Shown one piece after another: positions 955 to 64,000 of a stretch of DNA of 64,000 bases. Location: IMG/VR virus record IMGVR_UViG_3300042261_002385, positions 310,001-374,000 of that record. The stretch is one strand, 5' to 3'. The notes beneath the pieces were generated by a model. The model did not search any database. It had not been told where the DNA came from and saw nothing but the letters and a program-made list of their open reading frames with translations. The translations under genes and the position numbers were made by a program. Every line of letters begins with the position of its first letter. The first letter of the stretch is position 1.

Positions 955-1407
955 TTGCGTTTCAATACTAAATTAAACAACGTAATGAACAAAGTAGATA
1001 AATTTCTAGAATTCTTCTTAGAACACATAGATGACCCAAGAATCTCAGTTTTCAAGAAAATGAAATATGGTCACAGATACTACTATATCAATTTTTATGT
1101 TGACGAAGACCCAACTTCTCAGAATAAACAAGCAGGAATTTTTCAATATAGAGACAATATGGAAATTGTCTTTGACAATAGAAATAATTGCATTGAGGTA
1201 TTCGGTGGTGAAGACAGTAACTCACTAATTATTGAGGATTTAGAATTACTTAAAAAGTGGTCTAATATATTAGAAGAAATAGTTTCTAAAAACCTGGAAG
1301 ATAGAGTAATAAATGTTTTTGAAAAAACTTTGAGCGAATGTTTTAATAAAAATCTACATAGAGAATTACAAATGAAAAAAATATTCAAACAAGATGAACG
1401 CTTATAA
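955..1407 (+). CDS. Hypothetical protein
   Basis: 150-aa ORF preceded by an AAC-N16-GATA promoter-like element; overlaps the next gene. The true start may be the ATG near 984. Confidence 0.7.
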   Translation: MRFNTKLNNVMNKVDKFLEFFLEHIDDPRISVFKKMKYGHRYYYINFYVDEDPTSQNKQAGIFQYRDNMEIVFDNRNNCIEVFGGEDSNSLIIEDLELLKKWSNILEEIVSKNLEDRVINVFEKTLSECFNKNLHRELQMKKIFKQDERL

Positions 1408-1888
1408 TCAGGAAGAAATTGATAGAATCAATAAAGTTAAAGATACTAATGATAAATTAGAAGAGTTTTTCAACGATAAAAGAGCAGAGTGGAATAAAAA
1501 TGTTGAGCCACTTTTCAAAATTATTCGTGTAGACTTGACAAATCCAACTTCTGCTAAAGACATTATGGAAGCTCAATCTTTAGCACTTTCCTATAGACAA
1601 GGTATTAACGAACAAATTAATTTCTTCTTAAATAAAAGAAGTAAAGAAACTACTAAAATTAAAAAACTAAGACAAGATAAGTTTATTTTTTACGCAACAG
1701 GATTCGGAGTCAAAACTAATTTAGGGGAAAAAGGAATTCTAATTGACGGACATTTGGCCGAAAATGACAGAAGTTTAGAACTCATCGAATCTTATATTGA
1801 ATTTCTAAGAGACACCGTTAAGAATTTAGAAAGCTTAAGTTACTCAATCAAAAATATGATTGAACTAATGAACTACTTAGGTCGTTAA
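1394..1888 (+). CDS. uvsY: UvsY-like recombination mediator protein
   Basis: Helical 164-aa protein with C-terminus IEFLRDTVKNLESLSYSIKNMIELMNYL resembling T4-like UvsY ends; T4-like replication context. Confidence 0.6.
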   Translation: MNAYNQEEIDRINKVKDTNDKLEEFFNDKRAEWNKNVEPLFKIIRVDLTNPTSAKDIMEAQSLALSYRQGINEQINFFLNKRSKETTKIKKLRQDKFIFYATGFGVKTNLGEKGILIDGHLAENDRSLELIESYIEFLRDTVKNLESLSYSIKNMIELMNYLGR

Positions 1889-3003
1889 TCAATCTTTTTA
1901 TTCCATTTAGTTTCGATTCCCATGTTTCTGAGAACTTGGTGACCACGAGAACAATCCATACATAACTGTTTATCACCATCGTAATCTTTAATAAGAATAT
2001 CACCATCACAGTCTTCACATCTTTCTCTATCACCATAAACACTATGTAAGTAGTAGCAATTTTTGTCAGATAAATTTGACAAACTATCTTTATCTTTACT
2101 TAAAAAACACATCGTATCTACATAAGGATAGTTTCTAAAATCGGCATCTAGTTTTAATTTTACTTCACCAGCGACCTCAGAACCTTTGTAAATAAAAATA
2201 ACATTTTCACCATCATGTGACGATGTTTTCTTTTTATAAAACCAACCTTCGTTATTAGCAAATTCCTTAAATCGATTTACATCTGAGTCACGATTGGTAT
2301 ATACTCTATCCATAAAATACTTAGACTCACAAGGAGACTTCTTTACTTTCCAAACCAAAGCCCTTCCGTGAATCTTATCATCACCATCTACATAAATAAG
2401 TAATTTAACTTTAGTTGGATTTTCTGTGTATATCTTAAATATTTTATTACTTTCTTCTCTCATACAAGAGCTTCCTAAAGTTCCAGTTTTACTGTAGTAT
2501 TTACCCTCATCATAATATTTTGCAATATCTTCTCCAGAAACTAGTTTAAATTGTATTGTAGAAATTTCTGAACTTGCTTTCCATGCATTTACAAAAGATT
2601 CTCTATCTGAATCAGAAATTGAAATATTTTTTAATTGACAAATGTAGTTTACAATTTTTCCGATTTTAACTTCTCCTCTTCCAGGCATAGTAAAAGGATA
2701 GTCTGGATTATCATAAACTTGATCTATTACAGTTTTGACCTTTGATTGATTAATAAAACTTACCATGTCTTCTGAATCAACTAAATCAAAGTAGTTTTGT
2801 TTTACTTTGCTATCTGAAAACCAATGTTGATTTTCAATGACATCTAAAATATGCTCAGCAATTTCAGAAACTTTACCAGATTGTTTAGTCAAAGATTTCA
2901 TCTTCATAATAAAATCAGTGGTAGCATAGATATGACCCTCTAAAAGAGAGAAGATTTCAAATTTTAATCTTTCAAGTAGAAAACCATCGTATCGAGTTAT
3001 CAT
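1885..3003 (-). CDS. Hypothetical protein, paralog of 60212..61669, with CTS-like N-terminus and two CxxC motifs
   Basis: Shares GxLGSSCM, GRALxW, DRxY and YPYxDT motifs with 60212..61669; starts MITRYDGFLLE; TAATATATA upstream. Confidence 0.8.
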   Translation of the reverse strand: MITRYDGFLLERLKFEIFSLLEGHIYATTDFIMKMKSLTKQSGKVSEIAEHILDVIENQHWFSDSKVKQNYFDLVDSEDMVSFINQSKVKTVIDQVYDNPDYPFTMPGRGEVKIGKIVNYICQLKNISISDSDRESFVNAWKASSEISTIQFKLVSGEDIAKYYDEGKYYSKTGTLGSSCMREESNKIFKIYTENPTKVKLLIYVDGDDKIHGRALVWKVKKSPCESKYFMDRVYTNRDSDVNRFKEFANNEGWFYKKKTSSHDGENVIFIYKGSEVAGEVKLKLDADFRNYPYVDTMCFLSKDKDSLSNLSDKNCYYLHSVYGDRERCEDCDGDILIKDYDGDKQLCMDCSRGHQVLRNMGIETKWNKKID

Positions 3004-3031
3004 ATAACCCTATATATTATTTTCAACAAAT

Positions 3032-3391
3032 ATGAAATTCAAATTAAAAGAGGACTGGATACACGAATCAACTTTTTTAGGTAAAACCGTAACAAAAAAG
3101 TTATATGACAAGGGACACATCTTTGAGCCAGAAAATGGAATTTATAAAATCATAGACCATACTGGAGGGATAATAGAATTAGATGAAAATCAAATGAGAA
3201 CTTTACCATCTGATAATTTTGAAGAAGTCATCGAAAAACAAGATGATTTTGAAATTATTATAGAAGAAATCCCAGATGACGATGATATTTTAGTAAGAAA
3301 CTGGAGAATTCAACTAGATGTAAAAACAACTAGAAAGAAACTAAAAGAAGTGCAAAGAATAATAGAAGAATACGTAAAACCAATTTTATAA
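3032..3391 (+). CDS. Hypothetical protein
   Basis: 119-aa ORF, 2 nt from the downstream aminotransferase (operon-like). Confidence 0.7.
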   Translation: MKFKLKEDWIHESTFLGKTVTKKLYDKGHIFEPENGIYKIIDHTGGIIELDENQMRTLPSDNFEEVIEKQDDFEIIIEEIPDDDDILVRNWRIQLDVKTTRKKLKEVQRIIEEYVKPIL

Positions 3392-3393
3392 CA

Positions 3394-5178: not shown

Positions 5179-5186
5179 GTTTTAAT

Positions 5187-5738: not shown

Positions 5739-5802
5739 ATGGCTATATATTAAATCTAAATTGTGATAAAACAAAATTCTAATTTTGTAATATCATGAAA
5801 GT

Positions 5803-6576: not shown

Positions 6577-6599
6577 ATTTAAATCCATAAATTTGATGT

Positions 6600-9790: not shown

Positions 9791-10021
9791 ATGAAATTAG
9801 ATGAACTATATCCATTTTATCTCATTTTTTTGGAAATGAGATTGGAAAAGAATATAATTAATAAAGGTAAGTATTCTCTTCTTAAAATTTCCGAATCATA
9901 CTTTGAGAATTTTAAAAAGAGATGGGACTTAGAAGAAACTTTAAGAAGTGAAGTTATAGAATACAATAAATCTGAAATAAGAGATAAAAAGATAGACGAT
10001 ATATTCGATGACATTGATTGA
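9791..10021 (+). CDS. Small hypothetical protein ending IRDKKIDDIF
   Basis: 76-aa ORF, TGATATATA upstream; carries the recurrent C-terminal motif. Confidence 0.7.
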   Translation: MKLDELYPFYLIFLEMRLEKNIINKGKYSLLKISESYFENFKKRWDLEETLRSEVIEYNKSEIRDKKIDDIFDDID

Positions 10022-10400
10022 AAAAATACAAGTTGATGGAACTAATGTAAGTTTTTACAATGGTATCGATATTGATAGAGTCATAAGTCACCCTAAAGAT
10101 GGTTCATCTGGCTTTATTTTTTGTTTTATAGACAACTGGATTAAAGAAGTTAAAAAATGGGAAAGAGAGTCTAAAATAGACTCAGTATTAGTAGGAAAAA
10201 AATTCAGAAAGTTTGAAAGTAAAAATCTTGAAAACAATTACGTCGCTATTTATCAATTAGAAGGAACAGAACCAGGTAAGTTATTTGAAATTATTAAAGA
10301 CAAAGTTTTAAATAAAAATTTTCCCGAACACCCCTGGATACCGATATCAGGAATTGATAAAGGAGCTTGGAAAATAGTAAATTCAAAGGTTTCAAACTGA
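10008..10400 (+). CDS. Hypothetical protein (internal RESKIDSVL motif)
   Basis: 130-aa ORF overlapping the previous gene by 14 nt. Confidence 0.7.
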   Translation: MTLIEKIQVDGTNVSFYNGIDIDRVISHPKDGSSGFIFCFIDNWIKEVKKWERESKIDSVLVGKKFRKFESKNLENNYVAIYQLEGTEPGKLFEIIKDKVLNKNFPEHPWIPISGIDKGAWKIVNSKVSN

Positions 10401-14610: not shown

Positions 14611-14847
14611 ATGACACTAAAAGAAATTTACGAAGCCAATATTGACATAAAAGAGTCTCAGATTCCAGAAGAGTGGAAGGAGAGTTTCTCTAAATTTATT
14701 ATGGGTTCAACTTGTTTAGCTGAGACCAATGAAGATGGAACTGTAAAAGAATTTATTTACTATGCTTGTGACTTTAGGGCTTGGTATTTTCAAAATCAAA
14801 AAGCTATTGAAAGAGATATAAAAATCAATCAAATATCTAATAAATAA
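14611..14847 (+). CDS. Small hypothetical protein ending ERDIKINQI
   Basis: ATG 14611 follows TATATTTG; recurrent C-terminal motif. Confidence 0.72.
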   Translation: MTLKEIYEANIDIKESQIPEEWKESFSKFIMGSTCLAETNEDGTVKEFIYYACDFRAWYFQNQKAIERDIKINQISNK

Positions 14848-16475: not shown

Positions 16476-17138
16476 ATGAATAAAGACCTCAGCAAATTCT
16501 TACTAAGTCAATCAATATCCAGTACTTTTCAGTATGACTACTTCAAAAAAACACAAAGAAAAAATACTACTTCACACCTTTTGGAATCAAACGGTCTACC
16601 TGTTGATATTTTTTCAAAATTATTAGACGAAAGAATAATTTTTTTATCAGATGAAATTGATTCAGATGTTTGTAACATCATCAAAGCACAACTTCTTTAC
16701 TTAGACAGTGAGTCAAACGATGACATTTCCATCTATATTGATAGCCCGGGTGGGTCAGTTTATTCAGGAATGGGATTGTTAGATGTGATTGACTTTGTTA
16801 ATTGTGATATATCAACAGTAAATACTGGATTAGCAGCATCTATGGCAGCAGTAATTCTTTGTTCAGGTGAAAAAGGAAAAAGAAAAGCTTTAAAAAGAAG
16901 TAGAACTATGATACATCAACCTCTTACCTATGGTGGTTGGATGCAACAAGCATCTGATGTAGAAATAGAAGCTAAAGAAATGAATCATCTAAAAAGAGAA
17001 TTATACGAAATTATTTCAGACAGAACTGGACAGTTGTATGATAAAGTTTATAAAGATGGTGATAGAGACTACTGGATGTCATCTAATGATGCGAAAAAGT
17101 ATGGTATGATTGATGAGATTATTGCCAAAAGAAAATAA
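16476..17138 (+). CDS. clpP: ATP-dependent Clp protease proteolytic subunit
   Basis: DIFSKLLDERIIFL, YIDSPGGSV, AASMAA (Ser), MIHQP (His), RD.WMS (Asp); ATG 16476 preferred over the TTG start. Confidence 0.95.
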   Translation: MNKDLSKFLLSQSISSTFQYDYFKKTQRKNTTSHLLESNGLPVDIFSKLLDERIIFLSDEIDSDVCNIIKAQLLYLDSESNDDISIYIDSPGGSVYSGMGLLDVIDFVNCDISTVNTGLAASMAAVILCSGEKGKRKALKRSRTMIHQPLTYGGWMQQASDVEIEAKEMNHLKRELYEIISDRTGQLYDKVYKDGDRDYWMSSNDAKKYGMIDEIIAKRK

Positions 17139-31785: not shown

Positions 31786-34008
31786 TTATGGCTTAAATAA
31801 ATCAGTTCCATTGTATTCCCAATGCCAAGGTTCATATCCAGCACCGGCTTTTTTAGCCCAGTTTGGATTAATCCAGCCATATTTTTTTGCATTAGCTTCC
31901 ATCCAGTCGAAATATTGATTGCCTGGACCATTTCCAAAACCACCAATATCTACTGCTTGACCCCAACCATGTTTTGATGTTCCTGGAGGAGCAGCCGCTA
32001 CACCTGTTGGTTTTTTAGCATTAAACGATCCGACTTTTCTACCTTTATTTTTAGGATCGACTTTTTTGGTATATGGATTTAATCCAGTATCATAATAGTC
32101 CCAATCAAAAATTTTGTTCTGAACGTTAAATGTTCTGTATCCATCAGTTATTTTCATGTCTTTACCAAACTGGGCTTTATAAGCTTTGTTTAGTTCATTA
32201 AGTTTCTTTACAGCATTTTTTTCTATCTTGTGACCACAGAAGTCTAATTTTGTTAACAAATTACTTGGTAAATCACCATTAAAAACTGTTCTACCTTGGA
32301 CAGTAAGTTTTTGTTGAAACCTCTTTTGTCCAGAACCACCTCCCTTAGAGGCACTGTCCGTAGCTGTTTTTGCCGACACCTCAACTTCTGGAGTTCCCGT
32401 AGACGCAGTTTCTGCTGCGACAGTAGAAGTTCCTTCAGTTGTTGTAGAACCTTCAGTCTCTTCTTCTAATCCACCAGATTCTCCGAAGGCACTTTGCTCA
32501 GCGTCATTTAAATTAAAGTCAATCTGTTCATCCTCACCGACGAAAGCTTCCTCTAAAAACTCAGGAGATAATCCAGATAAGTCATCAGCTTCATCACTGA
32601 ATATAAATCCTTCTACCGGAACGTCGGCTTCTATATCACCAACCCATATTTGAAATTGAGGAGCAGGCTCATCAGTTTTTACGATCCAATTCTCAGGAAA
32701 CACTGGATTCATTTTTATCAAAACTACCGGTTCACTTTGTGTAGCTGCAATTGCCGCTGATCCACTTCCACCAGTAGCAGGATTTGGAGTAAGAACGTTC
32801 GGATTATCTCCAACTGTTTCCCACTTGAAAGCCTTCCCAGAATCTGTAAAGGACTTTTTAGGTGAATAATCATTTATCAAATCGGTCTCTGGATATGTGT
32901 AACTAGGAACTGCTAACCTTAAGTTATAACTTTTAGCTGAAGGATATGAGGTCGCTAATGACTTAACCCAATTTTCTATTACATTATTTACTATAAATTC
33001 ATCTTTCACTTCATAGCTAAATGTGATAGACAATGGTATTGTAGAATTTGTTATACCACCGGCAAACTCTAAAACATATCTCGGATTGTATTTATCATCA
33101 AATGACCAAAATCTTTCAAACTCCTCATCACCTTCATCATCAGCAGATGGTTGCACCACTGGATTAGGAACAACATAAAAACTTTTGAAAATATAATTTG
33201 GAGTATTCACTTCTTTTAAAGATTCATCTGAATATTCGTAACCTGAAATATTTCTGGTAAAACTCGACGGCCCAGTTTTCGGTAGAGTTAAATCTACAGA
33301 CACACCGGAAACAGAAATCACATAGTCTCCTGTGCCTTGTTCAAAGCCATCATTTAGTGCACTATTTTGAGCGTGCGCTAATGCACTACTAAGTGTATAG
33401 GTATTTGAAAGTGTTACTCCATAAAACTCATCGATACTACCTGTTCCGGTAGATGTTTTATAGTTTAATTCAAAAAAATTAGGAAGTTCTACATCTATAT
33501 CAGCTGGTGATAATCCATCAAGTAAAATCGCTGTGTCAACCAGAATCTTAGTCGGATCAGAAGCTGTTCCATTTCCATAAACTTCATATGCTTCAAATTG
33601 ATAAGTTATTTCTAGATTTTTTCTCCAAGAAATATTAATATAAGCTCCATTATTTAAGTAATATGGATCCTCTCCGAATTTTCTCAACTGAGGAACGTCA
33701 TCAGCCCAAGGATTCTGAACTATTTTAAATAAGTTCGGTCCTAATTTTGAACCTATTTTATTAGCCTCGAATTCCGAATTACTACTAATATACTCTTGTA
33801 TAATTTCGTCATTAGTTTTGGTTTGATATCTCTCACCGTCGTAAATTACTTCTTGCCAATACAACTGACCACTCAGTGAAACTTTACCAACAGCTATTCT
33901 TTGTGAGTTTGACGCTGTTCCTTGTAATAGCATTACTCTTAAATCCAGAGCACCGGTGTTTGCACCTTCTACTATTTTTCTAACTCTTACTTGTTTTAAT
34001 GTATCCAT
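31786..34008 (-). CDS. Large tail-associated protein with C-terminal M15 (VanY-like) Zn D-Ala-D-Ala peptidase
   Basis: ITDGYRTF..Q...AAPPGTSKHGWGQAVDI...YGW...EPWHWEY. Confidence 0.85.
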   Translation of the reverse strand: MDTLKQVRVRKIVEGANTGALDLRVMLLQGTASNSQRIAVGKVSLSGQLYWQEVIYDGERYQTKTNDEIIQEYISSNSEFEANKIGSKLGPNLFKIVQNPWADDVPQLRKFGEDPYYLNNGAYINISWRKNLEITYQFEAYEVYGNGTASDPTKILVDTAILLDGLSPADIDVELPNFFELNYKTSTGTGSIDEFYGVTLSNTYTLSSALAHAQNSALNDGFEQGTGDYVISVSGVSVDLTLPKTGPSSFTRNISGYEYSDESLKEVNTPNYIFKSFYVVPNPVVQPSADDEGDEEFERFWSFDDKYNPRYVLEFAGGITNSTIPLSITFSYEVKDEFIVNNVIENWVKSLATSYPSAKSYNLRLAVPSYTYPETDLINDYSPKKSFTDSGKAFKWETVGDNPNVLTPNPATGGSGSAAIAATQSEPVVLIKMNPVFPENWIVKTDEPAPQFQIWVGDIEADVPVEGFIFSDEADDLSGLSPEFLEEAFVGEDEQIDFNLNDAEQSAFGESGGLEEETEGSTTTEGTSTVAAETASTGTPEVEVSAKTATDSASKGGGSGQKRFQQKLTVQGRTVFNGDLPSNLLTKLDFCGHKIEKNAVKKLNELNKAYKAQFGKDMKITDGYRTFNVQNKIFDWDYYDTGLNPYTKKVDPKNKGRKVGSFNAKKPTGVAAAPPGTSKHGWGQAVDIGGFGNGPGNQYFDWMEANAKKYGWINPNWAKKAGAGYEPWHWEYNGTDLFKP

Positions 34009-34010
34009 TT

Positions 34011-34541
34011 TTAAACTCCACCTATATTGAAATTATCATTATTTATTCTTACAGAATCTTTAGGATTACCTTTAGCCACTGGTGGTAATGCCAAACCAGT
34101 TTTGTTGTATTTAGATCTTGAACCATCGACTCTTGTCTTTTTAGATGGAACTGAGATTGCAGTAAGTGCCTTGTTTGCCTGAGATGATAAATCAGCTTCC
34201 TCTGTTATTCTATGAGCTGATAAGTCTATTATTGATGGATATTTAATAACTTGTCCTCTTTTGATATTCAACGGATTATCAATATTATTTATTGTAAGCA
34301 ACACATCAATCTCTCCATAATAGTCTTCAATACTGACATAATCAAGTTCATAAATACTTTTCAGAATTAAATCAATTCTCATTTCTTCCTCAATAGGGAC
34401 TATGTACTCGGCTAATTTTATTGTAGGAACAGAATTTAGTATGGTTGATTTAAACAAATCAACTAAAGACTCTGAATTTCCATTACGAGATAGTTGTTCA
34501 TATAACGATTTTATGTTGAAACCTTCACCTAATGACGACAT
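34011..34541 (-). CDS. Baseplate wedge protein, gp53/tail-X LysM-like
   Basis: EEMRIDLILKSIY...LLTINNIDNPLNIKRGQVIKYP. Confidence 0.65.
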   Translation of the reverse strand: MSSLGEGFNIKSLYEQLSRNGNSESLVDLFKSTILNSVPTIKLAEYIVPIEEEMRIDLILKSIYELDYVSIEDYYGEIDVLLTINNIDNPLNIKRGQVIKYPSIIDLSAHRITEEADLSSQANKALTAISVPSKKTRVDGSRSKYNKTGLALPPVAKGNPKDSVRINNDNFNIGGV

Positions 34542-38479: not shown

Positions 38480-40705
38480 ATGAATATAATAGATTATAAA
38501 CTGTTTTCAGAACTCCAAAGAGATGAACCAATTAATGAAGAAGTTGGTTTAAGAAACCTTAAGAAGATTGCCAAAAGTTTAGATACAATCGACCAAGCAC
38601 TTGTCGGAACTAAAAGATTAGAGATAAATCCATCTTCAAAAGCGAGTATGAATGATATATCAAATGTTGTAAGTGGAAATAGAAAGTGCGAAATTTATTT
38701 TCACAAAGACTTAGACGGAGTTACATCAGCTCTTGCTATGAAGCAAGTTCTTATGAGTCAATATCAAATTGAATGTGTTGATTGTCATATAATTCAGTAT
38801 GGTGGCTTAGAATTTGCAGTTCAAAAACCTAAACCAGGAAACTTGGCAGTGTTAGTAGATTTTGCCCATTCAAAACCAATGTTTACAATTGCCACAGATC
38901 ATCACCAAGAACAAGTTGGCGCAGAAGACACATCATCAACATACTATAAACACTCAAGATCAAACGTTGAAACTATTTCTGGAGAAATTGCTAAACAAGA
39001 AATTTTTCCACAAAGAGACATTGAATTTATCCAAACAATAGATTCAGCTAACTTTTTTAAATACGGTGTTACACCAGATGAAGTTCAAAACTCAATTTTT
39101 AAATTAGATAAATCGATGCCTATCGATAAATTGAAGTTTATGATGGGATTCGTTACTAATAGATTATTATTAGCATATAAGAACAAACCAATTACTGTAA
39201 AGTCTAAAGATGGAAAAAGAAATCACATTAATAAAAATATTTTAGAATGTTTAGTTTTAGATAGTAATCCAAATCTTTACTCAATGTATAATAACCTACT
39301 TCATTATATGAATACGGCAGTGACCAGTGATAAATTAGGTAGATTAGCTACACCTGAAGAAGTCGCTCAAAACTTAGCCGATTATATTCAAACAATGAAG
39401 TCATATGATAAAAAAGAGTGGGATGATGACTATAAAATATTGAGACAATATGGTGGTGGATCGATGTTTAAACCAGGTTCATATGACAGATATGTTGTAT
39501 TCAAGAATAATCCAGAGACTGAATTTTTCGCCATCACCTGGCCTATGGGTCTAATACAAGTATCGTGTAATCCATTTGAACAGAAAAGACTACCTGATGT
39601 CAATTTAGGAGAAATAGCTAAAGAAGTTTTATCTAAATTTGAGCCAAAATTCAATAAATACTTTATCTCATTAAAGGCTATAAAAGAAGTATATGAAACT
39701 TCACAAGATTGGAAAAATCAACAAAAGATAAAAGGTGAAGAATTTTCAGGAATCGGATTCAAATTTTCAGATTTAGCGGCCTTTTACATTGATTGTATTT
39801 ATCAAAAAGATAATGTTAAGGTATCAAATATTTTGACAAAAGTGCTTGAAATAGATTTCAGAGCGAATTCTGACAATTATGAAGATATTGACGTAATTAT
39901 CGATTTTAATGGAACTAAATATCAATTTAAAACTACTGATATTGATTTAATTAAAGAATTTATTAGTATTTGTGGAGAATTCGGTTTAAATGCTGAAAAT
40001 AAACTTTTGGATTTTAAACAAAACAATCAATTTGAAGAAACTGAACCATTTATAAGTGACATTTCAAAAAAACAAATCGAAGGAGCAAAAAATAACATTA
40101 CAAACTTACTCAAATCAGATGGATTCTTAGGAAATGGAATTGTATCAAAAAGAGATAAAATTACAGTATTTGAAGGTCTACCTGATAGTAGATTAAAAGA
40201 AGCAATGGACGCAAACTATGAAGATTTAGATGAGGAACAACTTAAATATCTAAGCGGACTTAAAATTCCAGTTTGGGAACTTATTATAAGAAACTCAGGC
40301 GGTCACCCTTCTATAACAAATATATCTGGTCTTAACTTTTTAGCTTATAATAGAGCTGCTATGGAAGTTGGATACAAAACCACTAAATATACAGACATTA
40401 TGAAAATGATTGTTGATGAGTTTATTGTATCACTAAAACAAAAAATTGATTTAGCTAGAGAAGGAAAGTCAGTTACCTATGACACAAAAGGAGTTGAATT
40501 ATTAGGTCAAGATATTAATGAAAATTTTACTTACCAATTAGTTGATAAAGCTACTGGTCAAGCTAAACAAGTCACAAAAGACGAGTTTTTAAAAGCCGGT
40601 TCTGAAACAGGAATGAGAAGATCTAAAAAGAGTTCAATAGTTTATGATAATAAAAATAAAAAAGTTATTGCAAAATTTGAATCTTTTAATAATTCAAAAC
40701 TGTAA
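38480..40705 (+). CDS. DHH-family phosphoesterase, large
   Basis: YFHKDLDGVTSA, LVDFAH, ATDHH motifs; C-terminal GGH (NSGGHP) as in DHHA1. Confidence 0.78.
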   Translation: MNIIDYKLFSELQRDEPINEEVGLRNLKKIAKSLDTIDQALVGTKRLEINPSSKASMNDISNVVSGNRKCEIYFHKDLDGVTSALAMKQVLMSQYQIECVDCHIIQYGGLEFAVQKPKPGNLAVLVDFAHSKPMFTIATDHHQEQVGAEDTSSTYYKHSRSNVETISGEIAKQEIFPQRDIEFIQTIDSANFFKYGVTPDEVQNSIFKLDKSMPIDKLKFMMGFVTNRLLLAYKNKPITVKSKDGKRNHINKNILECLVLDSNPNLYSMYNNLLHYMNTAVTSDKLGRLATPEEVAQNLADYIQTMKSYDKKEWDDDYKILRQYGGGSMFKPGSYDRYVVFKNNPETEFFAITWPMGLIQVSCNPFEQKRLPDVNLGEIAKEVLSKFEPKFNKYFISLKAIKEVYETSQDWKNQQKIKGEEFSGIGFKFSDLAAFYIDCIYQKDNVKVSNILTKVLEIDFRANSDNYEDIDVIIDFNGTKYQFKTTDIDLIKEFISICGEFGLNAENKLLDFKQNNQFEETEPFISDISKKQIEGAKNNITNLLKSDGFLGNGIVSKRDKITVFEGLPDSRLKEAMDANYEDLDEEQLKYLSGLKIPVWELIIRNSGGHPSITNISGLNFLAYNRAAMEVGYKTTKYTDIMKMIVDEFIVSLKQKIDLAREGKSVTYDTKGVELLGQDINENFTYQLVDKATGQAKQVTKDEFLKAGSETGMRRSKKSSIVYDNKNKKVIAKFESFNNSKL

Positions 40706-41078
40706 TTTCGATTTCTTGTTTTAATTCATCACCATTTAAAACAGCTTCTATTCTATTATCTCTTGTAATAGACTTGTCATACTTAAGAATTATGGTATCA
40801 GACGGTGCAAATAAATCAAGATAAACTTCAATGTCATTTATTGAGCCCATATGTCTTAAAAGATTTTCTTTCATTAAATTTTCAATTTTAGAAAACTTAA
40901 AAGAATCATTTGATTCTAACAAATTATAAATAGACATAGGAACAATCATAAAGTTCTGACCTGTCTTAATTCTTTGCAAATTAATTTCTTTCATCAACTT
41001 GTTTGATTTTATTTTCAACATCTCGTAAGTAGTCTCAACAAAACCTAATCTCTCATCTTTATGTAAATCAATTATCAT
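40686..41078 (-). CDS. Hypothetical protein resembling a fragment of the gp23 major capsid protein; RDNRIEAVL motif
   Basis: GQNFMIVPMSIYNLLES...HMGSINDIEVYLDLFAPSDTIILKY parallels the gp23 GNFIxxS...GxL.GxxxVYxDxYAxxDYxxxGYK segment. Confidence 0.5.
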   Translation of the reverse strand: MIIDLHKDERLGFVETTYEMLKIKSNKLMKEINLQRIKTGQNFMIVPMSIYNLLESNDSFKFSKIENLMKENLLRHMGSINDIEVYLDLFAPSDTIILKYDKSITRDNRIEAVLNGDELKQEIEITVLNY

Positions 41079-41745
41079 TTAGTATAGAATTTATTTTGTC
41101 TTCTCTTAGCTTCTGGGTATTTACCACTCTCACTTTATAAACGTTATAGTCACAATCGTATACAGGAATTTTGATTTGATGTTCATTCATTGAAAAAGAT
41201 TTATTGATGCTATAATCAATATTCTGTAGTGACCAGACCATACTTTGAATTGGTTTATCAACAATATAAAAATGGCAATCATCTACGGTATCCTCAATAA
41301 CTGGACAGAAAAAACATGACACGTCAACTCCGAATGACATCATTTTGAATTGTCTTGTGAAGTATGTAGGTAAAAATGTGTGACCGTCTTCCGGTTCTTT
41401 GAAAATATTATTACCACCAAGATTTAAATTACTATTTGAATTATTTGAAAAGAAAAGTATTTTAGGATTAAATCCATTCACATATAATTTGTCTATAACT
41501 TGATAAGCATCTACAAAGTTATTTCTATGTATTATAATATCTTTTGATTTTTCAAACATTTTTTTTATTGACAAATTGTAAATCTCTATCATCAATTTAC
41601 TAAACAAATCAGCTGAAAAAGATGAGTGTTGTTTTTTTTCAGATAATCTTAAATTTGTTGAACTAATAATATCACCAGAGTAGATAAACTCTACCGACTG
41701 TAGATAATCTTCTAAAGATTTCTTATAATTTTCAAACTGATTCAT
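41068..41745 (-). CDS. Hypothetical protein ending LREDKINSILN
   Basis: 225-aa ORF with an AAC-N16-GATA promoter upstream. Confidence 0.72.
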   Translation of the reverse strand: MNQFENYKKSLEDYLQSVEFIYSGDIISSTNLRLSEKKQHSSFSADLFSKLMIEIYNLSIKKMFEKSKDIIIHRNNFVDAYQVIDKLYVNGFNPKILFFSNNSNSNLNLGGNNIFKEPEDGHTFLPTYFTRQFKMMSFGVDVSCFFCPVIEDTVDDCHFYIVDKPIQSMVWSLQNIDYSINKSFSMNEHQIKIPVYDCDYNVYKVRVVNTQKLREDKINSILNDN

Positions 41746-51272: not shown

Positions 51273-51476
51273 TTATTTTAAAAGTTGAGATATTTTTTCT
51301 CGTCTTTTCCCATTTATCCAATTATGAAATCTATCAACACTTACAACTTCACCTTTACCACTATCGAATTGTAAATCTATCCAGTTACTAACAATTTTAT
51401 AAGATATAACTTTTATTGATGACTTATATCTTAAATCTTCTTGTGTGAATTCGGTGAGTTTTTCTAAAGTAATCAC
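51273..51476 (-). CDS. Small hypothetical protein ending RREKISQLLK
   Basis: 67-aa ORF with GTGA overlap; recurrent C-terminal motif. Confidence 0.6.
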   Translation of the reverse strand: MITLEKLTEFTQEDLRYKSSIKVISYKIVSNWIDLQFDSGKGEVVSVDRFHNWINGKRREKISQLLK

Positions 51477-51811
51477 TTGATTATATTTTGTATTTTTTCC
51501 TCTCTATTTCTTGAAATCAATTCAGCATTAAAAGGTATCAAATTTTCATCAAAATTATACTTATAAATTTTTCCATTGTCTTGCCAAACAACATAAGAAG
51601 AAAAAGATACCTTATTTCCGAGATAATCTACTCCGGTAAATGCTTCTTTGTGAAGACTTTTTCCAAGCCCATCTCTTTTAAGTTCGATTTCCGATATTAT
51701 ACCTAAAAGTTGATCAAAATCAACATTAATTTCTATAATCTCTTCCCCTGTGGTTGATATATAATCACCCGATTTTAGAAATTTAACCTTTAATATTTTT
51801 TCTATTTCCAT
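51473..51811 (-). CDS. Hypothetical protein ending REEKIQNIIK
   Basis: 112-aa ORF directly after purA. Confidence 0.7.
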   Translation of the reverse strand: MEIEKILKVKFLKSGDYISTTGEEIIEINVDFDQLLGIISEIELKRDGLGKSLHKEAFTGVDYLGNKVSFSSYVVWQDNGKIYKYNFDENLIPFNAELISRNREEKIQNIIK

Positions 51812-51812: not shown

Positions 51813-53099
<1,287 letters not shown>

Positions 53100-53111: not shown

Positions 53112-53612
53112 TTATTGATTGAAAAGTTGTTCTAGATTGTTATCTCTAATAATTCCGGATTCTTGTAAGACAGTTGATAATATATCAGTAAAATTTTCTC
53201 TGTTTATTTCAATTAGTCTTTGTTTAATAGTGTCAATTAATTCATCGAACATCTGAGTGTCTTGGTAATAAGACCTTTTATGGTAAGCATAATTAAATGA
53301 AAAACCTTCTTTATTAACAGTAATCTCTAAGTAATTATCATCGTTATAAAGAGTATTTTTCTGTCGTTTTTTAATATTTGTTATATCTGGTATAGAAATA
53401 GAAAATTCATCGTCTGTAAAAGTAATTCTCAATCCTTCATTATAACAAATTAGACTCAAAATCAACTGTTTAGTTTTTTCTGAGACTTCAGAATCATAAA
53501 GTGAGTATTCTGGTTTTTCTCTCATAACTACTTCAGATTTCTGAAGCATACTCACCTCGTTATAAATTATTTGAGCTATTTTCTGAAGTTTTTTAGTTTT
53601 CTTCTTTTTCAT
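53112..53612 (-). CDS. Hypothetical protein ending IRDNNLEQLF
   Basis: First gene of the purA operon; AAC-N16-TATA promoter. Confidence 0.7.
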   Translation of the reverse strand: MKKKKTKKLQKIAQIIYNEVSMLQKSEVVMREKPEYSLYDSEVSEKTKQLILSLICYNEGLRITFTDDEFSISIPDITNIKKRQKNTLYNDDNYLEITVNKEGFSFNYAYHKRSYYQDTQMFDELIDTIKQRLIEINRENFTDILSTVLQESGIIRDNNLEQLFNQ

Positions 53613-56738: not shown

Positions 56739-57365
56739 ATGTCTTACTTAAAAATGGGGTTCAACTTTCTGAAATACCTCTTAATTTCTAATCCGATTAA
56801 GTTATTGATGTTGATTACTGCTATTATTCTATTTAGTAACGCAGGAACAATACCCAGTGAATACGTTTACTATGATTTAGTATCACAATCAAAAGACGGA
56901 AATACTAATGTTTATGTTATCAGGTCTCATGAATCAAATGACGACAGCTCTTATGATATTTACTCTTCAAATAAACCTCAGAAAGTTATCAACAATCAGC
57001 TAGTACTTTGGGATTATCATGATGGAAATGTAGTGCTTTATGTGTTTTCAGCTATTCTATCTTTAGTTTTACTAATTTTGACAATTTTTGGTATTGTAAA
57101 TGATGATGATGAGATCGGATGGGACATAAAGAGTTGTTATACAAAGGCAATAACGACTCTTATTTATTGTGAATTAGAAGGAGAAATTTATTATTATATG
57201 ATTATGGGTAGATTAATTGAGAAAAGAAAAGACCAAATAAGATTTACTTCAAATTTAGCAAGAGAAATGAGAATATTTAATATGTCTGATGTATATAGAC
57301 TTCCAAAATTTTCAACAAAAACTCAAAAAAGAAACAACATTTTAAATAAATTAGGTATAAATTAA
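56739..57365 (+). CDS. Membrane protein ending KRNNILNKLGI
   Basis: Two TM segments; TAAATTTG 5 nt upstream. Confidence 0.7.
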   Translation: MSYLKMGFNFLKYLLISNPIKLLMLITAIILFSNAGTIPSEYVYYDLVSQSKDGNTNVYVIRSHESNDDSSYDIYSSNKPQKVINNQLVLWDYHDGNVVLYVFSAILSLVLLILTIFGIVNDDDEIGWDIKSCYTKAITTLIYCELEGEIYYYMIMGRLIEKRKDQIRFTSNLAREMRIFNMSDVYRLPKFSTKTQKRNNILNKLGIN

Positions 57366-58626: not shown

Positions 58627-58630
58627 TTAC

Positions 58631-59640: not shown

Positions 59641-59658
59641 TTAGATATATATTAAATT

Positions 59659-59883: not shown

Positions 59884-60165
59884 TTAAAGATATTTTATTT
59901 CAGAATAAAGAGGTCTATTTACTCTATGTGACATATAACCTTCTATACCTCTTGAGTCTAAACCTAATTCCTTAATCAACTCTTGAGAGTATTGAACAGG
60001 ATTTTTACCCATTTCTATTTCTGACTCAATGTCTAAACGATTTATTAACTCTCTTACTTCAACCGCGCTCATATTTAACTTACCTAATTGTCTTCTTAAT
60101 TCATCAACAAATTCTTCCGGTGTGTAGTTTGATTCAAATAATTTAAAAGACTTTAAGTGCTTCAT
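59884..60165 (-). CDS. Small hypothetical protein with CTS-like N-terminus
   Basis: MKHLKSFKLFES; TAATATATA 4 nt upstream. Confidence 0.75.
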   Translation of the reverse strand: MKHLKSFKLFESNYTPEEFVDELRRQLGKLNMSAVEVRELINRLDIESEIEMGKNPVQYSQELIKELGLDSRGIEGYMSHRVNRPLYSEIKYL

Positions 60166-60211
60166 AGTTTATATATTAAATATATAATTTGTAAGATTAA
60201 TATATACTTTT

Positions 60212-61669
60212 ATGATAAGCAAATATTTAGAATTTATTAACGAGTCAAAAGAACTCATTTTAGAATCTGACGTTGTCTATTCTAAAATGTTTAGAACAGC
60301 ATTAACAAAGATTGATAGCCCAATATCAAAAATACTTTTGGATGTAGAAAATAAAGACCTACCAGTAGCTTCAAACTATTTTGATTTAGCTAGAGGAAAA
60401 AACGACACACTTTCTGTTATTCCAGATAGAAAAGCTAAAGAGATTTTAGAAGATACAAAAGAAATGGTTAGATTTACTGGCTCAGGTGGTGGTTGGTTAA
60501 AACACTCAGATGCTAACACATCTATATTCCAACAATTAGGATATGAACCAGAAGGTGAAGTTTATCAACCTAATTCAACTGCAATAGGTGAGGTAGTTTC
60601 AAAAGTAACATCACAAACATCAGGAAAAGTTTGGTGTTATGTGAAATTTCCAGACGGTAAAGGTGTTTATAATCAAGAGAAACTTAGAGTAGTTGATGAG
60701 AGACTAAAAGAAGTTTGGTCAAAAAATAGACAAGAAGTTAGAATAGGAAGAGCTATAAGAGCACTATTAACAGTAGCAGGTGAGAATGTTTTGGATAAAG
60801 ATTTAGAGGTTTTTGTAAATCTTTGGAAAGCAACAATTGATAAAATGAATGATAGATTCCAATATTTTGATGTAGTTGAAGGCCAAGATATCGGTCACTG
60901 GTATCACTACTCTAACTACAAAGAAAGAAGTGGAAGTCTTGGTTCTAGTTGTATGTCAAATGTAAATTCTAATTATTTCGATATCTATATGACAAATACA
61001 GATGTTTGTAAATTAATAATACTTAGATCTGTTGAAGATGATTCTCTAATTGTTGGAAGAGCTTTACTTTGGACACTTACCGATGGTAAAAAATTTGTTG
61101 ATAGAATTTACACAATTCAAGATTCAGATGTTCAACTTTTTAGAGACTATGCAAGAGAGAATGGTTGGTATACAAAACAATATAATTCATCTTCAGATTC
61201 TGGTAGAGCAAATGCTCCTGATGGAACACAAGTTGATTTAGGAAAAATTACCGTAGATATTAAAGCAGGAATGTATGAAGCTTATCCTTATTTAGATACT
61301 CTTAAATATTTTAAACCAAGAGAAGGAACACTTTCTAATGTGAGAACTGGTCGAGGTGATGAATATACATTAGAGGACACTTCTGGTGAACTTTGGAGAT
61401 GTGAATACTGTGGTGGATCAGGAATGCAAACTTGTGGTAACTGTGATGGGGACGGTTATTGGGATTGTCACAGATGTAGTGGATCTGGAGAAAGAGAGTG
61501 TGGTGAATGCGATGGTTCTGGAAAGGTAGAGGGAGACGAAGGTGAAGAGGAGTGTCCAGAATGTGGTGGGTCAGGAAACAATGAATGTTCATATTGTGAT
61601 GGTTCAGGAAGAGAAGATTGTGATGATTGCAACGGAAGAGGAGAACACTCTTGTTATGAATGTCAATAA
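60212..61669 (+). CDS. Hypothetical protein with C-terminal DnaJ-type CxxCxGxG zinc-finger repeats; paralog of 1885..3003
   Basis: Seven CxxCxGxG units (CEYCGGSG to CDDCNGRG) plus CYEC; GSLGSSCM, GRALLW, DRIY core; starts MISKYLEFINES. Confidence 0.82.
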   Translation: MISKYLEFINESKELILESDVVYSKMFRTALTKIDSPISKILLDVENKDLPVASNYFDLARGKNDTLSVIPDRKAKEILEDTKEMVRFTGSGGGWLKHSDANTSIFQQLGYEPEGEVYQPNSTAIGEVVSKVTSQTSGKVWCYVKFPDGKGVYNQEKLRVVDERLKEVWSKNRQEVRIGRAIRALLTVAGENVLDKDLEVFVNLWKATIDKMNDRFQYFDVVEGQDIGHWYHYSNYKERSGSLGSSCMSNVNSNYFDIYMTNTDVCKLIILRSVEDDSLIVGRALLWTLTDGKKFVDRIYTIQDSDVQLFRDYARENGWYTKQYNSSSDSGRANAPDGTQVDLGKITVDIKAGMYEAYPYLDTLKYFKPREGTLSNVRTGRGDEYTLEDTSGELWRCEYCGGSGMQTCGNCDGDGYWDCHRCSGSGERECGECDGSGKVEGDEGEEECPECGGSGNNECSYCDGSGREDCDDCNGRGEHSCYECQ

Positions 61670-61672
61670 TTT

Positions 61673-62386
61673 ATGAAGAATATAATAACCAATTTTAGGA
61701 TTTTTGAAAAAAAAGAAATTGAAAAAGAGCAAAAATTTCAGCCTTCTAGTGAAGTGCAAAAAGAAGTTGACCGATTCGAAACAAGGTGGGAAATTAAGTT
61801 AGATCCACGTTTCACTATGAAAGAGATAGAAATCATTTCAGAAGGATTAGAATATTATAATACTAAATTTATTAAAAGTAGAATTGATAGAATAATTAGA
61901 AAAGATTTAGGTGGAGTTCATGGTCGTTGGAAAAATACCGAGACAAAAAAATGGATGACACTAAATCCTAGAATCTTTAATTTTAAACGTAGATGGAAAG
62001 ATGAAGACACTGATATACCATATGCACTTTTCACAGTAGTTCATGAGATAGCACATTGTGTTGACTACTTAGAAAAAATATCGTTCTCAAAAAAGTGGCA
62101 AGCAATCTCTGGTTGGAAAAAATGTGATATCAATGATAGAATACCAGAAGGATACAAAAGATATATTGAAAAAAGACCAGGTAGAAAATTAACCGGTCAT
62201 AAAAAATCAGGATGGATTTATAAAGAAGGTTCTGACTTTTGTAGAAAATATACGTCTCGAAATCCAAGAGAAGATTTCGCTGACTGTTTGGCATTTGTAA
62301 TTTTAGGATTTGAAGAAAAACTAAAAGGAGAAGGAGGCTTGAAAAAGCTTGAAATCATTAAGCAATTACTCAAAAAGATAGATTAA
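61673..62386 (+). CDS. Zincin-like metallopeptidase
   Basis: HEIAH followed by Y..RNPREDFAD (downstream Glu ligand). Confidence 0.68.
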   Translation: MKNIITNFRIFEKKEIEKEQKFQPSSEVQKEVDRFETRWEIKLDPRFTMKEIEIISEGLEYYNTKFIKSRIDRIIRKDLGGVHGRWKNTETKKWMTLNPRIFNFKRRWKDEDTDIPYALFTVVHEIAHCVDYLEKISFSKKWQAISGWKKCDINDRIPEGYKRYIEKRPGRKLTGHKKSGWIYKEGSDFCRKYTSRNPREDFADCLAFVILGFEEKLKGEGGLKKLEIIKQLLKKID

Positions 62387-62441
62387 TTTGAAATTTTAAG
62401 TGTTTTTTACTTTATATATAACTTAAAAATAAATTTAAGAT

Positions 62442-63272
62442 ATGTTATTAAAAGTAGGAAGTAAGGGAGATGATGTAAAAAAACTCCAAACAAAATTAGG
62501 ATTGACATCAGATGGTTCTTTCGGACCTGGAACTGAAAAAGCAGTTAAGGCTTGGCAAACAGCAAATGGACTAAAAGCGGATGGTATAGTAGGTGATGGA
62601 ACCTGGTCTAAACTATTCGGAGAATCAGCTCCAGTAGCTGCAGCAAAACCAGCAGTTGTAATACCACCATCCGATTTCAAATTGGAAGCACTAAAAGGAC
62701 ATATTCCAGATGCGGTTATAGCTCAAATACCGGATACAGCAGCAAAATTTAATATCACAAATCCATTGAGATTGGCTCATTTTTTAGCACAATGTGGTCA
62801 CGAAAGTGGTGGATTTAAAGCAGTTTCAGAAAATCTAAACTATTCAGCCAAAGGATTACTTGGAACTTTTCCAAAATACTTTAACGCTACAACAGCTGCT
62901 CAATATGAAAGAAAACCAGAAATGATTGCTTCAAGAGTTTATGGTGGAAGAATGGGCAACGGAGATGAATCTACAAAAGAAGGATTTAAGTTTAGAGGAA
63001 GAGGATATATTCAATTAACTGGAAAATCAAACTACACTAATTTTACGAAATTTATTGGAGAAGATTGTATTGCAAATCCAGATTTAATTGCTACAAAATA
63101 TCCTTTAGCTTCAGCAGCTTTCTTCTTTGATTCAAATAAACTTTGGTCAATATGTGATTTAGGTTCATCTGATGATGTTGTAACTAAAGTTACTAAGAGA
63201 GTTAATGGGGGAACTATTGGATTAGCTGATAGAATTAAACACTTTAAAGAATATTATGCTCTATTAAAATAA
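62442..63272 (+). CDS. Endolysin: peptidoglycan-binding domain plus GH19
   Basis: LKVGSKGDDVKKLQ..L....DG.FG..T..AV..WQ...GL.ADGIVG; FLAQCGHESGGF, FRGRGYIQLTG, VTKRVNGG.IGL.DR. Confidence 0.95.
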   Translation: MLLKVGSKGDDVKKLQTKLGLTSDGSFGPGTEKAVKAWQTANGLKADGIVGDGTWSKLFGESAPVAAAKPAVVIPPSDFKLEALKGHIPDAVIAQIPDTAAKFNITNPLRLAHFLAQCGHESGGFKAVSENLNYSAKGLLGTFPKYFNATTAAQYERKPEMIASRVYGGRMGNGDESTKEGFKFRGRGYIQLTGKSNYTNFTKFIGEDCIANPDLIATKYPLASAAFFFDSNKLWSICDLGSSDDVVTKVTKRVNGGTIGLADRIKHFKEYYALLK

Positions 63273-63326
63273 AAATCAAAAAAATGATTTTAGAAAATAA
63301 TATATAAAAAAAATAATTTTACTAAA

Positions 63327-63665
63327 ATGAAACATGTTAAAACTTTTGAAGGTTTCTTTTCAAGATTATTCGGAGGAGACAAAATCGGAGACTGTGACAA
63401 AATGACTACTAATAGAGATGGTGATGGTATTGAAGGTATGGGTACTGATTATGTAATATTTGGTGGTAGAAAATTCGAAGAAGATGATATCGTTTATGCT
63501 GATGCAAAAGACCCAAAAAACAACGGATTTGAGAATAAATCAGGTATCTTACCAAGAATTGGTTACAGAGAGAAAGATTCAAAAAACGACGGAAAACTTA
63601 TTATCCCAGGTGGTGATATGTTGAAAAAATGGTTGAAATCTAGAGGACTCGGAAGTAGAATATAA
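63327..63665 (+). CDS. Hypothetical protein with CTS-like N-terminus
   Basis: MKHVKTFEGFFS; TAATATATA upstream. Confidence 0.72.
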   Translation: MKHVKTFEGFFSRLFGGDKIGDCDKMTTNRDGDGIEGMGTDYVIFGGRKFEEDDIVYADAKDPKNNGFENKSGILPRIGYREKDSKNDGKLIIPGGDMLKKWLKSRGLGSRI

Positions 63666-63669
63666 CTAT

Positions 63670-63700
63670 TAAAAACCACTCAATATTGAGTGGTTTTTTT
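63670..63700. terminator. Bidirectional intrinsic terminator
   Basis: AAAAACCACTCAA-TA-TTGAGTGGTTTTTTT. Confidence 0.8.
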
Positions 63701-64000
63701 AATTTAATACTTCTTCTAATTTTATTTCTCTAATTACAGATTTATAAATATCAGGACTAGTTGAATTTAATATTTCTAAAACTTTTTTTCTATTAAAAAA
63801 ACCTTTATAATATGTTTTTTTATTTTCAATGAAATCACCATACTCAGCAGTTAAGTTTATGAAAAGATTAGGTTTGATTCTTAGTATACATTTATAAAGT
63901 ATACCACCAGTCTCATCATCATAAACACTTAATGTAAATGATTGCTCAAATTCAGAACCAACGTTAGAAAGCCCTGGTTTAAATCCTAATTTTTGAAACC
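63699..64000 (-). CDS. Partial hypothetical protein (5' end beyond the window) ending IREIKLEEVLN
   Basis: Manual translation is open from the right edge to TAA at 63699-63701. Confidence 0.7.
   Translation of the reverse strand, partial: FQKLGFKPGLSNVGSEFEQSFTLSVYDDETGGILYKCILRIKPNLFINLTAEYGDFIENKKTYYKGFFNRKKVLEILNSTSPDIYKSVIREIKLEEVLN

Follow-up and report, generated by a model that had tools for sequence, protein, structure and literature searches.

What, if anything, reads a short ending that is shared by many small and otherwise unrelated proteins of a huge phage? This question is raised by a 64,000-nucleotide stretch of DNA ("the window"), which is bases 310,001-374,000 of a single 436,265-bp IMG/VR virus record (IMGVR_UViG_3300042261_002385). 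An earlier note on this DNA had pointed out the pattern R[DE].K[IL]..[ILV] at or near the C-terminus of about 10 unrelated small proteins. We find that this "tail" is a short portable module on fast-evolving, small, soluble ORFans. Its 14-residue consensus is K-[SQ]-x-[IL]-R-[DE]-x-K-[LI]-[NKDE]-x-[IL]-[LGIF]-x-stop, and it comes in two flavors, ...K-L-x-x-[IL]-[LFI]-x-stop and ...K-L-x-x-L-G-I-stop (the "LGI" flavor). The arginine (Arg), from which we number the positions, lies exactly 10 residues from the C-terminus in about half of the cases and 9-11 residues from it in most carriers.

Among the 79 genes of the window, the strict pattern R[DE].K[IL]..[ILV] matches seven times, and five of these matches lie in the last 30 residues of the protein. 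Shuffling each protein gave a mean of 0.04 matches and a maximum of 1. For the whole record, simple greedy calling of open reading frames (ORFs) gave 539 genes with 94% coverage; these have 26 strict matches, with 20 in the last 30 residues. In the corresponding shuffles, there were 2.0 matches overall and, near the end, a mean of 0.17 and a maximum of 2. The enrichment at C-termini that the earlier note proposed to check is thus far above the shuffled background, both in the window and in the genome. Using a position matrix built from the first matches, we found that about 45 of the 539 ORFs carry the tail. The information content is about zero from position -30 to -5 and is concentrated in positions -4 to +9.

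The record (31% G+C, CheckV completeness of 95%) appears from its sequence to be the genome of a huge phage of the Bacteroidetes-infecting "Mahaphage" group. This clade contains the largest genomes of Al-Shayeb et al. 2020, for which Bacteroidetes were predicted as hosts (PMC7162821). The genome encodes a UvsW-like helicase, baseplate-hub and tape-measure-like proteins, and head genes (a gp23-like capsid protein, at 95 bits, and a gp21-like prohead protease domain). When the window's large genes were compared to GenBank phages by megablast, there was no match; relatives surfaced at the protein level. The helicase is 81% identical to that of LR745206.1 (634,780 bp), 80% identical to that of LR756502.1 (642,428 bp), and more distant from those of LR756504.1 (52%), LR756501.1 (735 kb; 45%), LR756500.1 (38%), and Lak phages (31%). 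We analyzed LR745206, LR756504, LR756501, LR756500, and Lak-B5 as whole genomes.

The tail is even more abundant in LR745206. Its 941 ORF-genes have 97 strict matches (81 in the last 30 residues), and 121-163 of them are tagged, depending on the matrix threshold. The earlier count of about 10 proteins therefore describes the window well (10 ORFs), and the totals are about 45 for the genome and about 120-170 for LR745206. Overall, 8-17% of the proteome is tagged. We also searched DNA directly with a back-translated pattern that includes the stop codon, using the reversed pattern as the control (in parentheses). There were 35 (2) matches in LR745206, 43 (2) in LR756502, and 30 (2) in a 476-kb IMG/VR contig. 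The same pattern occurs only once or twice each in T4, Tenacibaculum phage PTm1, Bacillus phage G, Lak-B5, LR756500, and LR756501. (A looser DNA pattern for the version of the tail in LR756504 was too noisy, with 42 matches versus 22 for the control.) A scan of IMG/VR for the LGI flavor found 52 loci, many of them on contigs of 150-480 kb, and 219 of the 855 ORFs in these loci are tagged.

The signal is in the protein rather than in the DNA. At the conserved tail positions, synonymous codons vary and are used as they are genome-wide. The tail's Arg is encoded by AGA (70%), AGG (18%), or CGN (12%), as compared to 76%, 12%, and 13% across the genome; six Leu/Ile codons occur at +4; and Lys is encoded by AAA or AAG in genome-like proportions. 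Furthermore, the motif is frame-specific: the strict pattern occurs 26 times in annotated frames versus 6 times in all other frames and intergenic regions of this genome, and 97 versus 21 times in LR745206. Because the codons vary synonymously and the motif keeps to the reading frame, the tail is almost certainly a real, shared, protein-level module. The LGI flavor is often encoded as GGWATATGA, with an ATGA overlap of start and stop codons. LGI tails are also found before TAA without an overlap, which makes the overlap a secondary constraint at best. As many as five to seven tagged genes in a row are linked by ATGA overlaps (for example, genome 398081-398395/398392-398616 and LR745206 375169-376409); in LGI runs, the last codons are GGW ATA TGA, and the Gly-Ile end doubles as the next gene's start codon.

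The proteins that carry the tail are small. In this genome, none is 250 amino acids (aa) or longer, and in LR745206 at most 3 of 213 are. Among proteins of at least 400 aa, 0 of 74 in this genome and 1 of 101 in LR745206 have the tail. By contrast, carriers make up 20-25% of all proteins of 80-160 aa in LR745206. Membrane-like segments are rare in them, and their median pI is 5.7.

The carriers' bodies (the proteins without the tail) are unrelated by sequence, as the earlier note had supposed. When we compared the 45 bodies from this genome to each other with BLASTP, no pair had an E value below 1e-3. The 208 bodies from this genome and LR745206 formed 187 clusters, with just one pair of paralogs within a genome, and 344 unique bodies (including those from the IMG/VR loci) formed 240 phmmer clusters. 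The body types that emerge are an SH3-like barrel, a Cys-rich type that resembles a Cys4 zinc ribbon, and an all-helical type. For 20 carriers and a 20-member barrel family, Pfam gave no family (E < 0.01), and PHROG scans gave only weak, unnamed matches; for two carriers, the ESM-Atlas gave only unnamed viral clusters. Across 17 pairs of orthologs between this genome and LR745206, the tail is kept at 30-66% identity of the bodies. A few pairs of orthologs differ in whether they have the tail, and more than half of this genome's carriers have no homolog in LR745206.

For the largest family of carriers, we built an AlphaFold2 model from an alignment of 20 sequences. The model has a six-stranded SH3-like barrel with a predicted local distance difference test (pLDDT) score of 85-93 and a C-terminal helix (residues 60-70) with a pLDDT of about 58. 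Searching with the barrel in Foldseek gave only generic SH3-like matches. The tail is predicted to be one short helix that runs from a Ser/Gln cap to the C-terminus. When a library of 1.84 billion proteins was searched with a profile of the barrel family, 4741 representatives matched at E <= 1e-3. Among the small matches listed for this profile, 99 of 108 end in the tail. The large, multi-repeat matches contain only the barrel part and no tail, with 4-12 tandem barrels in proteins of 460-1941 aa. Since the barrel occurs in these repeat proteins without the tail, the barrel and the tail are separable. Within the barrel family, conservation does reach a few residues upstream of the tail (F-x-T-L-E-E-W-R). 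A 225-aa protein with two tails and 36 close homologs gave a model with a pLDDT of only 38.

To compare the phages on an equal footing, we used a lineage-neutral definition of the tail, R...[ILMV]..[ILVMF][ILVFMG] with the Arg 9-16 residues from the end. The numbers of tails found and expected were as follows:

This genome: 48 found, 4.5 expected
LR745206: 170 found, 13.3 expected
LR756504: 113 found, 10.6 expected
LR756501: 19 found, 6.5 expected
LR756500: 4 found, 3.2 expected
Lak-B5: 4 found, 2.9 expected

The tails of LR756504 and LR756501 are versions of their own. In LR756504, the consensus is E-[YH]-R-K-x-[KI]-I-[EK]-[DEN]-L-[LI]-stop. In LR756501, it is E-[WF]-K-N-x-K-R-T-[KE]-L-[IM]-D-[KQ]-[MI]-L-N, which we found on 17 proteins with diverse bodies. 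Across the three versions, the Arg and positions +4, +7, and +8 are constant, and positions +1, +3, and +5 are lineage-specific. The clearest difference is a reversal of charge at +1. Just 2 of the 172 reciprocal-best-hit orthologs between LR745206 and LR756504 are tagged in both, so we tested the swap on independent body clusters. Counting each unrelated cluster once, LR745206 has 106 clusters with an acidic and 11 with a basic residue at +1, and LR756504 has 11 and 47, respectively (odds ratio 41, p = 1.7e-21). The low number of shared tagged orthologs also implies that the tail has been retained through an almost complete turnover of its carriers.

A change at +1 in concert across dozens of unrelated proteins is what one co-evolving partner would predict. 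Judging from these sequence patterns, we think it fairly probable that the tail is a free C-terminal docking helix that is read by one such partner. The helix would hang free from the folded body and fit into a single conserved partner, with the core contact made by the invariant Arg and the hydrophobic residues at +4, +7, and +8; +1 (acidic, basic, or Thr), +3, and +5 would be tuned to each lineage's partner. The earlier note had described a portable, amphipathic-helix docking signal that sends proteins to one partner or compartment. That the tail is portable, acts at the protein level, and is predicted to be helical agrees with part of this description, as does the co-variation by lineage.

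The 10 carriers in the window are listed below, by the position of the tail (from -4 to +9 around the Arg), strand, and ORF:

1348-1389, + strand: tail of ORF 985-1407 (140 aa), KNLH-R-E-L-Q-M-KK-I-F-KQDERL
9968-10009, + strand: tail of ORF 9791-10021 (76 aa), KSEI-R-D-K-K-I-DD-I-F-DDID, matrix score 28.3
14800-14841, + strand: tail of ORF 14611-14847 (78 aa), KAIE-R-D-I-K-I-NQ-I-S-NK
40734-40775, - strand: tail of ORF 40686-41078 (130 aa), KSIT-R-D-N-R-I-EA-V-L-N, then 15 residues
41077-41118, - strand: tail of ORF 41068-41745 (225 aa), TQKL-R-E-D-K-I-NS-I-L-NDN
51276-51317, - strand: tail of ORF 51273-51476 (67 aa), INGK-R-R-E-K-I-SQ-L-L-K, a weak variant with R at +1 and a score of 8.6
51476-51517, - strand: tail of ORF 51473-51811 (112 aa), ISRN-R-E-E-K-I-QN-I-I-K
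53118-53159, - strand: tail of ORF 53112-53612 (166 aa), SGII-R-D-N-N-L-EQ-L-F-NQ, score 25.4
57318-57359, + strand: tail of ORF 56739-57365 (208 aa), KTQK-R-N-N-I-L-NK-L-G-IN, a weak LGI member with a score of 6.3
63702-63743, - strand: tail of ORF 63699-64394 (231 aa), KSVI-R-E-I-K-L-EE-V-L-N, score 28.1

All eleven peptides that were originally quoted are present, and 10 of the 11 sit 9-25 residues from a stop codon. The positions given with them were the low-coordinate ends of the ORFs and not the positions of the motif. The eleventh peptide, RESKIDSVL, had been listed as an internal copy (10164-10190, at residue 52 of the 130-aa ORF 10008-10400). It has a matrix score of 8.4, versus 18-28 for good tails, and is probably a chance match.

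Several of these carriers have informative homologs. The tail of ORF 985-1407 is a variant, with Q at +3, M at +4, and the Arg 15 residues from the end, and the ortholog in LR745206 retains the tail (DLYRDYQMEKIFKKDERI). The ortholog of ORF 9791-10021 retains it at 54% identity of the bodies. In ORF 40686-41078, the Arg is 25 residues from the end, and the ortholog has ARDLKIESILDG and the same extension. The ortholog of the weak LGI member, ORF 56739-57365, ends with KRENFLNKIGIK. The ORF at 63699-64394 (genome 373699-374394, - strand) starts beyond the end of the window. In 120 metagenomic homologs of this protein (75-88% identity), the motif positions are fixed and other positions of the tail vary. 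The motif recurs inside this protein near residue 82 (TRDIDIDEILL); the second copy is outside the window and is kept in homologs, and the protein resembles a fusion of two tagged modules.

When are the carriers expressed? The regions upstream of genes hold two classes of motifs, one phage-specific and one bipartite. The phage-specific motif, T-rich...TAATATATAA, lies about 27 nucleotides before the start codon in 120 of 225 upstream regions. This "ATATATA promoter" precedes the genes for the capsid protein (genome 267436-269208, - strand), the hub, the tape-measure-like protein, and the phage sigma factor, as well as most large genes. All four relatives have kept a gene for a sigma-70/ECF-like protein (genome 82057-82656, - strand), which may serve this class. 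The second class is TTG-(19 nt)-TAnnTTTG, with a sharp peak in the spacing, which we take to be the known sigma-A type of promoter in Bacteroidetes. In LR745206, 34 carriers are in host-type units and 20 are in phage-type units, as compared to 97 and 218 untagged small genes (odds ratio 3.8, p = 1e-5). The corresponding enrichment of carriers in host-type units of this genome has an odds ratio of 2.1 (p = 0.09). We infer that the carriers are biased toward the earliest genes, which depend on the host's polymerase.

Our preferred candidate for the partner, which we put forward tentatively, is the phage's own ClpC together with its two or three ClpP paralogs. The relevant genes are:

Window 16476-17138, + strand: ClpP-family protease (220 aa; PF00574, 218 bits)
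Genome 385810-386535, + strand: another ClpP paralog
Genome 81465-82031, - strand: another ClpP paralog
Genome 32044-34176, - strand, outside the window: ClpC-like unfoldase (710 aa; 797 bits to residues 146-798 of Bacillus subtilis ClpC)

The phage ClpC keeps the UVR linker and the VGF loop for docking to ClpP. Because the alignment covers only residues 146-798 of the B. subtilis protein, the phage ClpC lacks the N-terminal adaptor-binding domain (Clp_N). A two-ring, ClpC-like gene is present in all six of the tail-bearing genomes that we tested and in none of five genomes without the tail (LR756500, Lak-B5, PTm1, T4, and phage G); in Lak-B5 and phage G, there are only proteins of ClpX size. 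ClpP is common across the huge phages. The gene immediately upstream of clpC, in this genome and in LR745206 alike, encodes a tagged protein of 137 aa. The excess of carriers in host-type promoter units and the near lack of the tail on proteins of at least 400 aa also speak for Clp. Separately, a UVR-like motif that resembles the linker (M-domain) of the phage ClpC occurs in a small tagged family (genome 381137-381388, - strand, and LR745206 296085-296384); by BLASTP, the LR745206 member and the ClpC are 44% identical over 55 aa (E = 4e-6).

If ClpC is the partner, then the tail would act as a degradation or recognition tag, and the phage would control the lifetime of its early accessory proteins. 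The tail does look like a degron for Clp in that it is a peptide at the extreme C-terminus of unrelated bodies, is predicted to be exposed, and occurs in a genome with genes for both an unfoldase and a peptidase. Known Clp signals such as ssrA (with SspB) and the C-terminus of MuA are likewise short, exposed, and C-terminal, and act on unrelated substrates. Degrons of the ssrA type are read by a Clp unfoldase or adaptor, and the phage encodes ClpC and ClpP. Also, some of the tails end in non-polar residues (LL or LGI), as Clp degrons do. However, ssrA is added by tmRNA and the phage's tail is encoded in each gene. The tail also differs from known degrons, which are usually unstructured, in that it is predicted to be helical and has an invariant Arg and conserved Asp and Lys, and one lineage with the tail has no ClpP. 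Among the partners suggested in the earlier note, Clp is the one with circumstantial support; the link itself is one that we infer. More broadly, it is possible, if far from assured, that there is a clade-wide tagging system in which one encoded C-terminal helix hands 8-17% of the proteins (a fast-evolving, early accessory arsenal) to ClpC-ClpP or to some other single, co-evolving receptor.

Several observations weigh against a docking helix read by one partner, or against Clp as that partner. Only one confident structure model underlies the free helix. Founder effects (the duplication of tagged genes within a lineage, followed by divergence of the bodies) could partly account for the lineage consensus, although they would still require selection on the tail. 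The co-occurrence of ClpC and the tail is confounded by phylogeny, as the six tail-bearing genomes are each other's closest relatives. There are 96 genes in common to this genome, LR745206, LR756504, and LR756501, and 38 of these have no match in two relatives without the tail. These 38 other genes share the present/absent pattern of ClpC, so phyletic profiling does not discriminate among receptors. In LR756501, which has 17 tails, ClpC has a normal N-domain and ClpP is missing. The N-terminal region of ClpC is built differently in different lineages, with no obvious link to the versions of the tail. Known Clp degrons are usually unstructured and do not need a conserved Arg, Asp, or Lys. Finally, the promoter class of the clp genes is uninformative and gives no argument from timing.

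The tail might instead bind a host protein that all of the carriers need to reach (such as RNA polymerase, the ribosome, a chaperone, or a protease), a phage protein from the set of 38 that are specific to the clade, or other tails, with pairing of the tails building mixed oligomers or a condensate. We consider this unlikely, but the concerted change by lineage and the free helix would fit it as well as they fit any common partner, and the bias toward early promoters would suit proteins that take over the host. The 38 conserved genes, six of which are in the window, match the phyletic pattern of the tail. In the LR756504 version, the first half of the tail is basic and the second half is acidic, which would suit antiparallel self-pairing. 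None of these partners is singled out, however. A host partner would have to vary from one lineage's host to the next in parallel with the tail, and the invariant Arg is not obviously needed for self-association.

Another proposal is that the tail targets proteins to the capsid: it would bind the scaffolding core of the prohead or the inner face of the gp23-like capsid, so that an arsenal of small proteins is packed and injected with the DNA. The best precedent is the capsid-targeting sequence (CTS) of T4, a short conserved peptide on hypervariable internal proteins (PMC3012670). Like the tail, the CTS of IPI, IPII, IPIII, and Alt is the only conserved part of unrelated small proteins (PMC3012670), and both phages have gp23/gp21-type head assembly. 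The tail's carriers are small, soluble, and hypervariable, as this proposal would expect. The prohead protease removes the CTS, which lies at the N-terminus, whereas the tail is C-terminal (as are 20 of the 26 strict matches), is not similar to the CTS in sequence, and shows no cleavage pattern. In particular, the gp21-type site is Leu/Ile-x-Glu, and only 23 of 156 tails have Glu at +6, so there is no conserved L-x-E site. There are 45-170 carriers per genome for the tail and a handful for the CTS; about 160 cargo species per virion would lack precedent. The tail is on no recognizable structural protein. The body of ORF 40686-41078 weakly matches the central part of the gp23 major capsid protein (Pfam E = 0.014; PHROG 138 E = 0.011), and there are two more short gp23-like fragments in the genome (128106-128258 and 179087-179164). 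The carriers are scarce in units with the head genes' ATATATA promoter and are enriched in host-type units. This bias away from the class of the capsid and baseplate genes is a poor fit to capsid loading, and nothing in our data supports the earlier suggestion of a second sorting system in parallel to the CTS. Encapsulin cargo peptides and the C-terminal helices of P22-type scaffold proteins dock inside an HK97-fold shell via basic or hydrophobic residues. The endings in L-G-I superficially resemble encapsulin peptides, which are extended and have a Gly/Ser-rich core of the L-G-I-G-S-L type. The agreement consists of the C-terminal position and L-G-I in 28 of 156 tails; the rest of the tail is a charged helix, and the promoter bias counts against the likeness. 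All told, capsid targeting seems quite improbable to us.

It is also conceivable, at long odds, that there is no shared partner and that the tail is an intrinsic structural helix (for capping, oligomerization, or protection of the C-terminus) inherited from one ancient superfamily of small proteins whose bodies have diverged. Small phage ORFans diverge quickly, the family with the SH3-like barrel and the tail is very large (4741 representatives), and in that family the conservation extends upstream. But over the whole set, the information content upstream is nil, and the bodies are of clearly different types (beta-barrel, Cys4 zinc-ribbon-like, and all-helical). Multi-repeat proteins contain the barrel but no tail, the model is least confident in the helix, and an intrinsic helix gives no reason for a concerted reversal of charge in about 50 unrelated families of one lineage.

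Lastly, we dismiss almost entirely the idea of a nucleotide-level signal (a promoter, terminator, recombination joint, or translational coupling) or of a tail that binds a T4-type clamp: the motif does lie about 30 nucleotides before the stop in tightly packed genes, the LGI-stop sequence GGWATATGA overlaps the next gene's ATG with its TGA stop, and the L-x-x-L-F spacing resembles that of the tails of T4 gp43, gp33, and gp55, but third positions and the Leu, Ile, and Arg codon families vary freely with genome-like usage, the motif is frame-specific, LGI tails also end at TAA, and neither a gp45 or beta-clamp family nor a tagged large replication enzyme was found. Codon variation and frame specificity rule out an element in DNA or RNA or a repeated DNA cassette. 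As for the clamp, searches for PF02916 (gp45) and PF00712 (beta-clamp) found nothing, and the large enzymes of replication and transcription are untagged. With 0 of 74 proteins of at least 400 aa tagged, the sliding clamp that had been suggested as a partner is unlikely. Clamp-binding motifs (T4 gp43/gp33/gp55 and the PIP box) share with the tail the location at the extreme C-terminus and the phi-x-x-phi-phi spacing, and they have no counterpart to its invariant Arg or to its Lys.

Some other features of the genome are worth recording. ARAGORN identified 28 tRNA genes, 27 of which are clustered at 37-76 kb (genome 36956-75560, - strand), with the other at 162091. An odd tRNA at genome 37118-37204 was called with a four-base anticodon loop reading (agta). 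A full-length adenylosuccinate synthetase (window 51813-53099, - strand; PF00709, 572 bits), which is an auxiliary gene for purine metabolism, lies between tagged small genes. A 291-aa protein with a GIY-YIG domain (genome 384854-385729, - strand), possibly a homing endonuclease, adjoins the second ClpP gene. Because a contig of 522,324 bp encodes a protein identical to the 231-aa carrier at the end of the window, the genome may in fact be larger than the 436-kb record.

Neither Pfam, nor PHROGs, nor the literature that could be searched yielded a description of this motif, in keeping with the earlier remark that no named function was known for it. Conceptually, the tail belongs with short, portable peptides for targeting or degradation. 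Its position and sequence set it apart from all known examples, as do its scale (8-17% of the proteome) and its lineage-specific co-variation. Besides the systems discussed above, it has a parallel in dockerins and cohesins, where one module is found on many proteins and lineage-specific versions imply a co-evolving receptor. Dockerins, though, are about 70 aa long, folded, and carried by secreted enzymes, while the tail is a 14-residue helix on cytoplasmic proteins, and we did not find a receptor with repeated docking sites in the style of dockerin and cohesin.

The tail looks like an undescribed address label or destruction tag that is read by a single partner. In huge phages, small ORFans that offer no handle for study make up most of the genes, and the tail defines a functional class of them from sequence alone. 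It implies a receptor that one peptide could fish out, and the charge-swapped versions from the sister lineages are a natural control for specificity. The tail could also be used as a portable tag to engineer cargo or the lifetime of proteins in phage systems of Bacteroidetes. More generally, the statistics of C-termini can reveal short linear motifs in phage genomes. If the tagging system is real, then the lifetime or location of more than 100 effectors would be controlled by one interaction. If the receptor is the head, these phages would have the largest known injected arsenal, and if it is the phage's own Clp protease, they would have a phage-encoded program of protein turnover.

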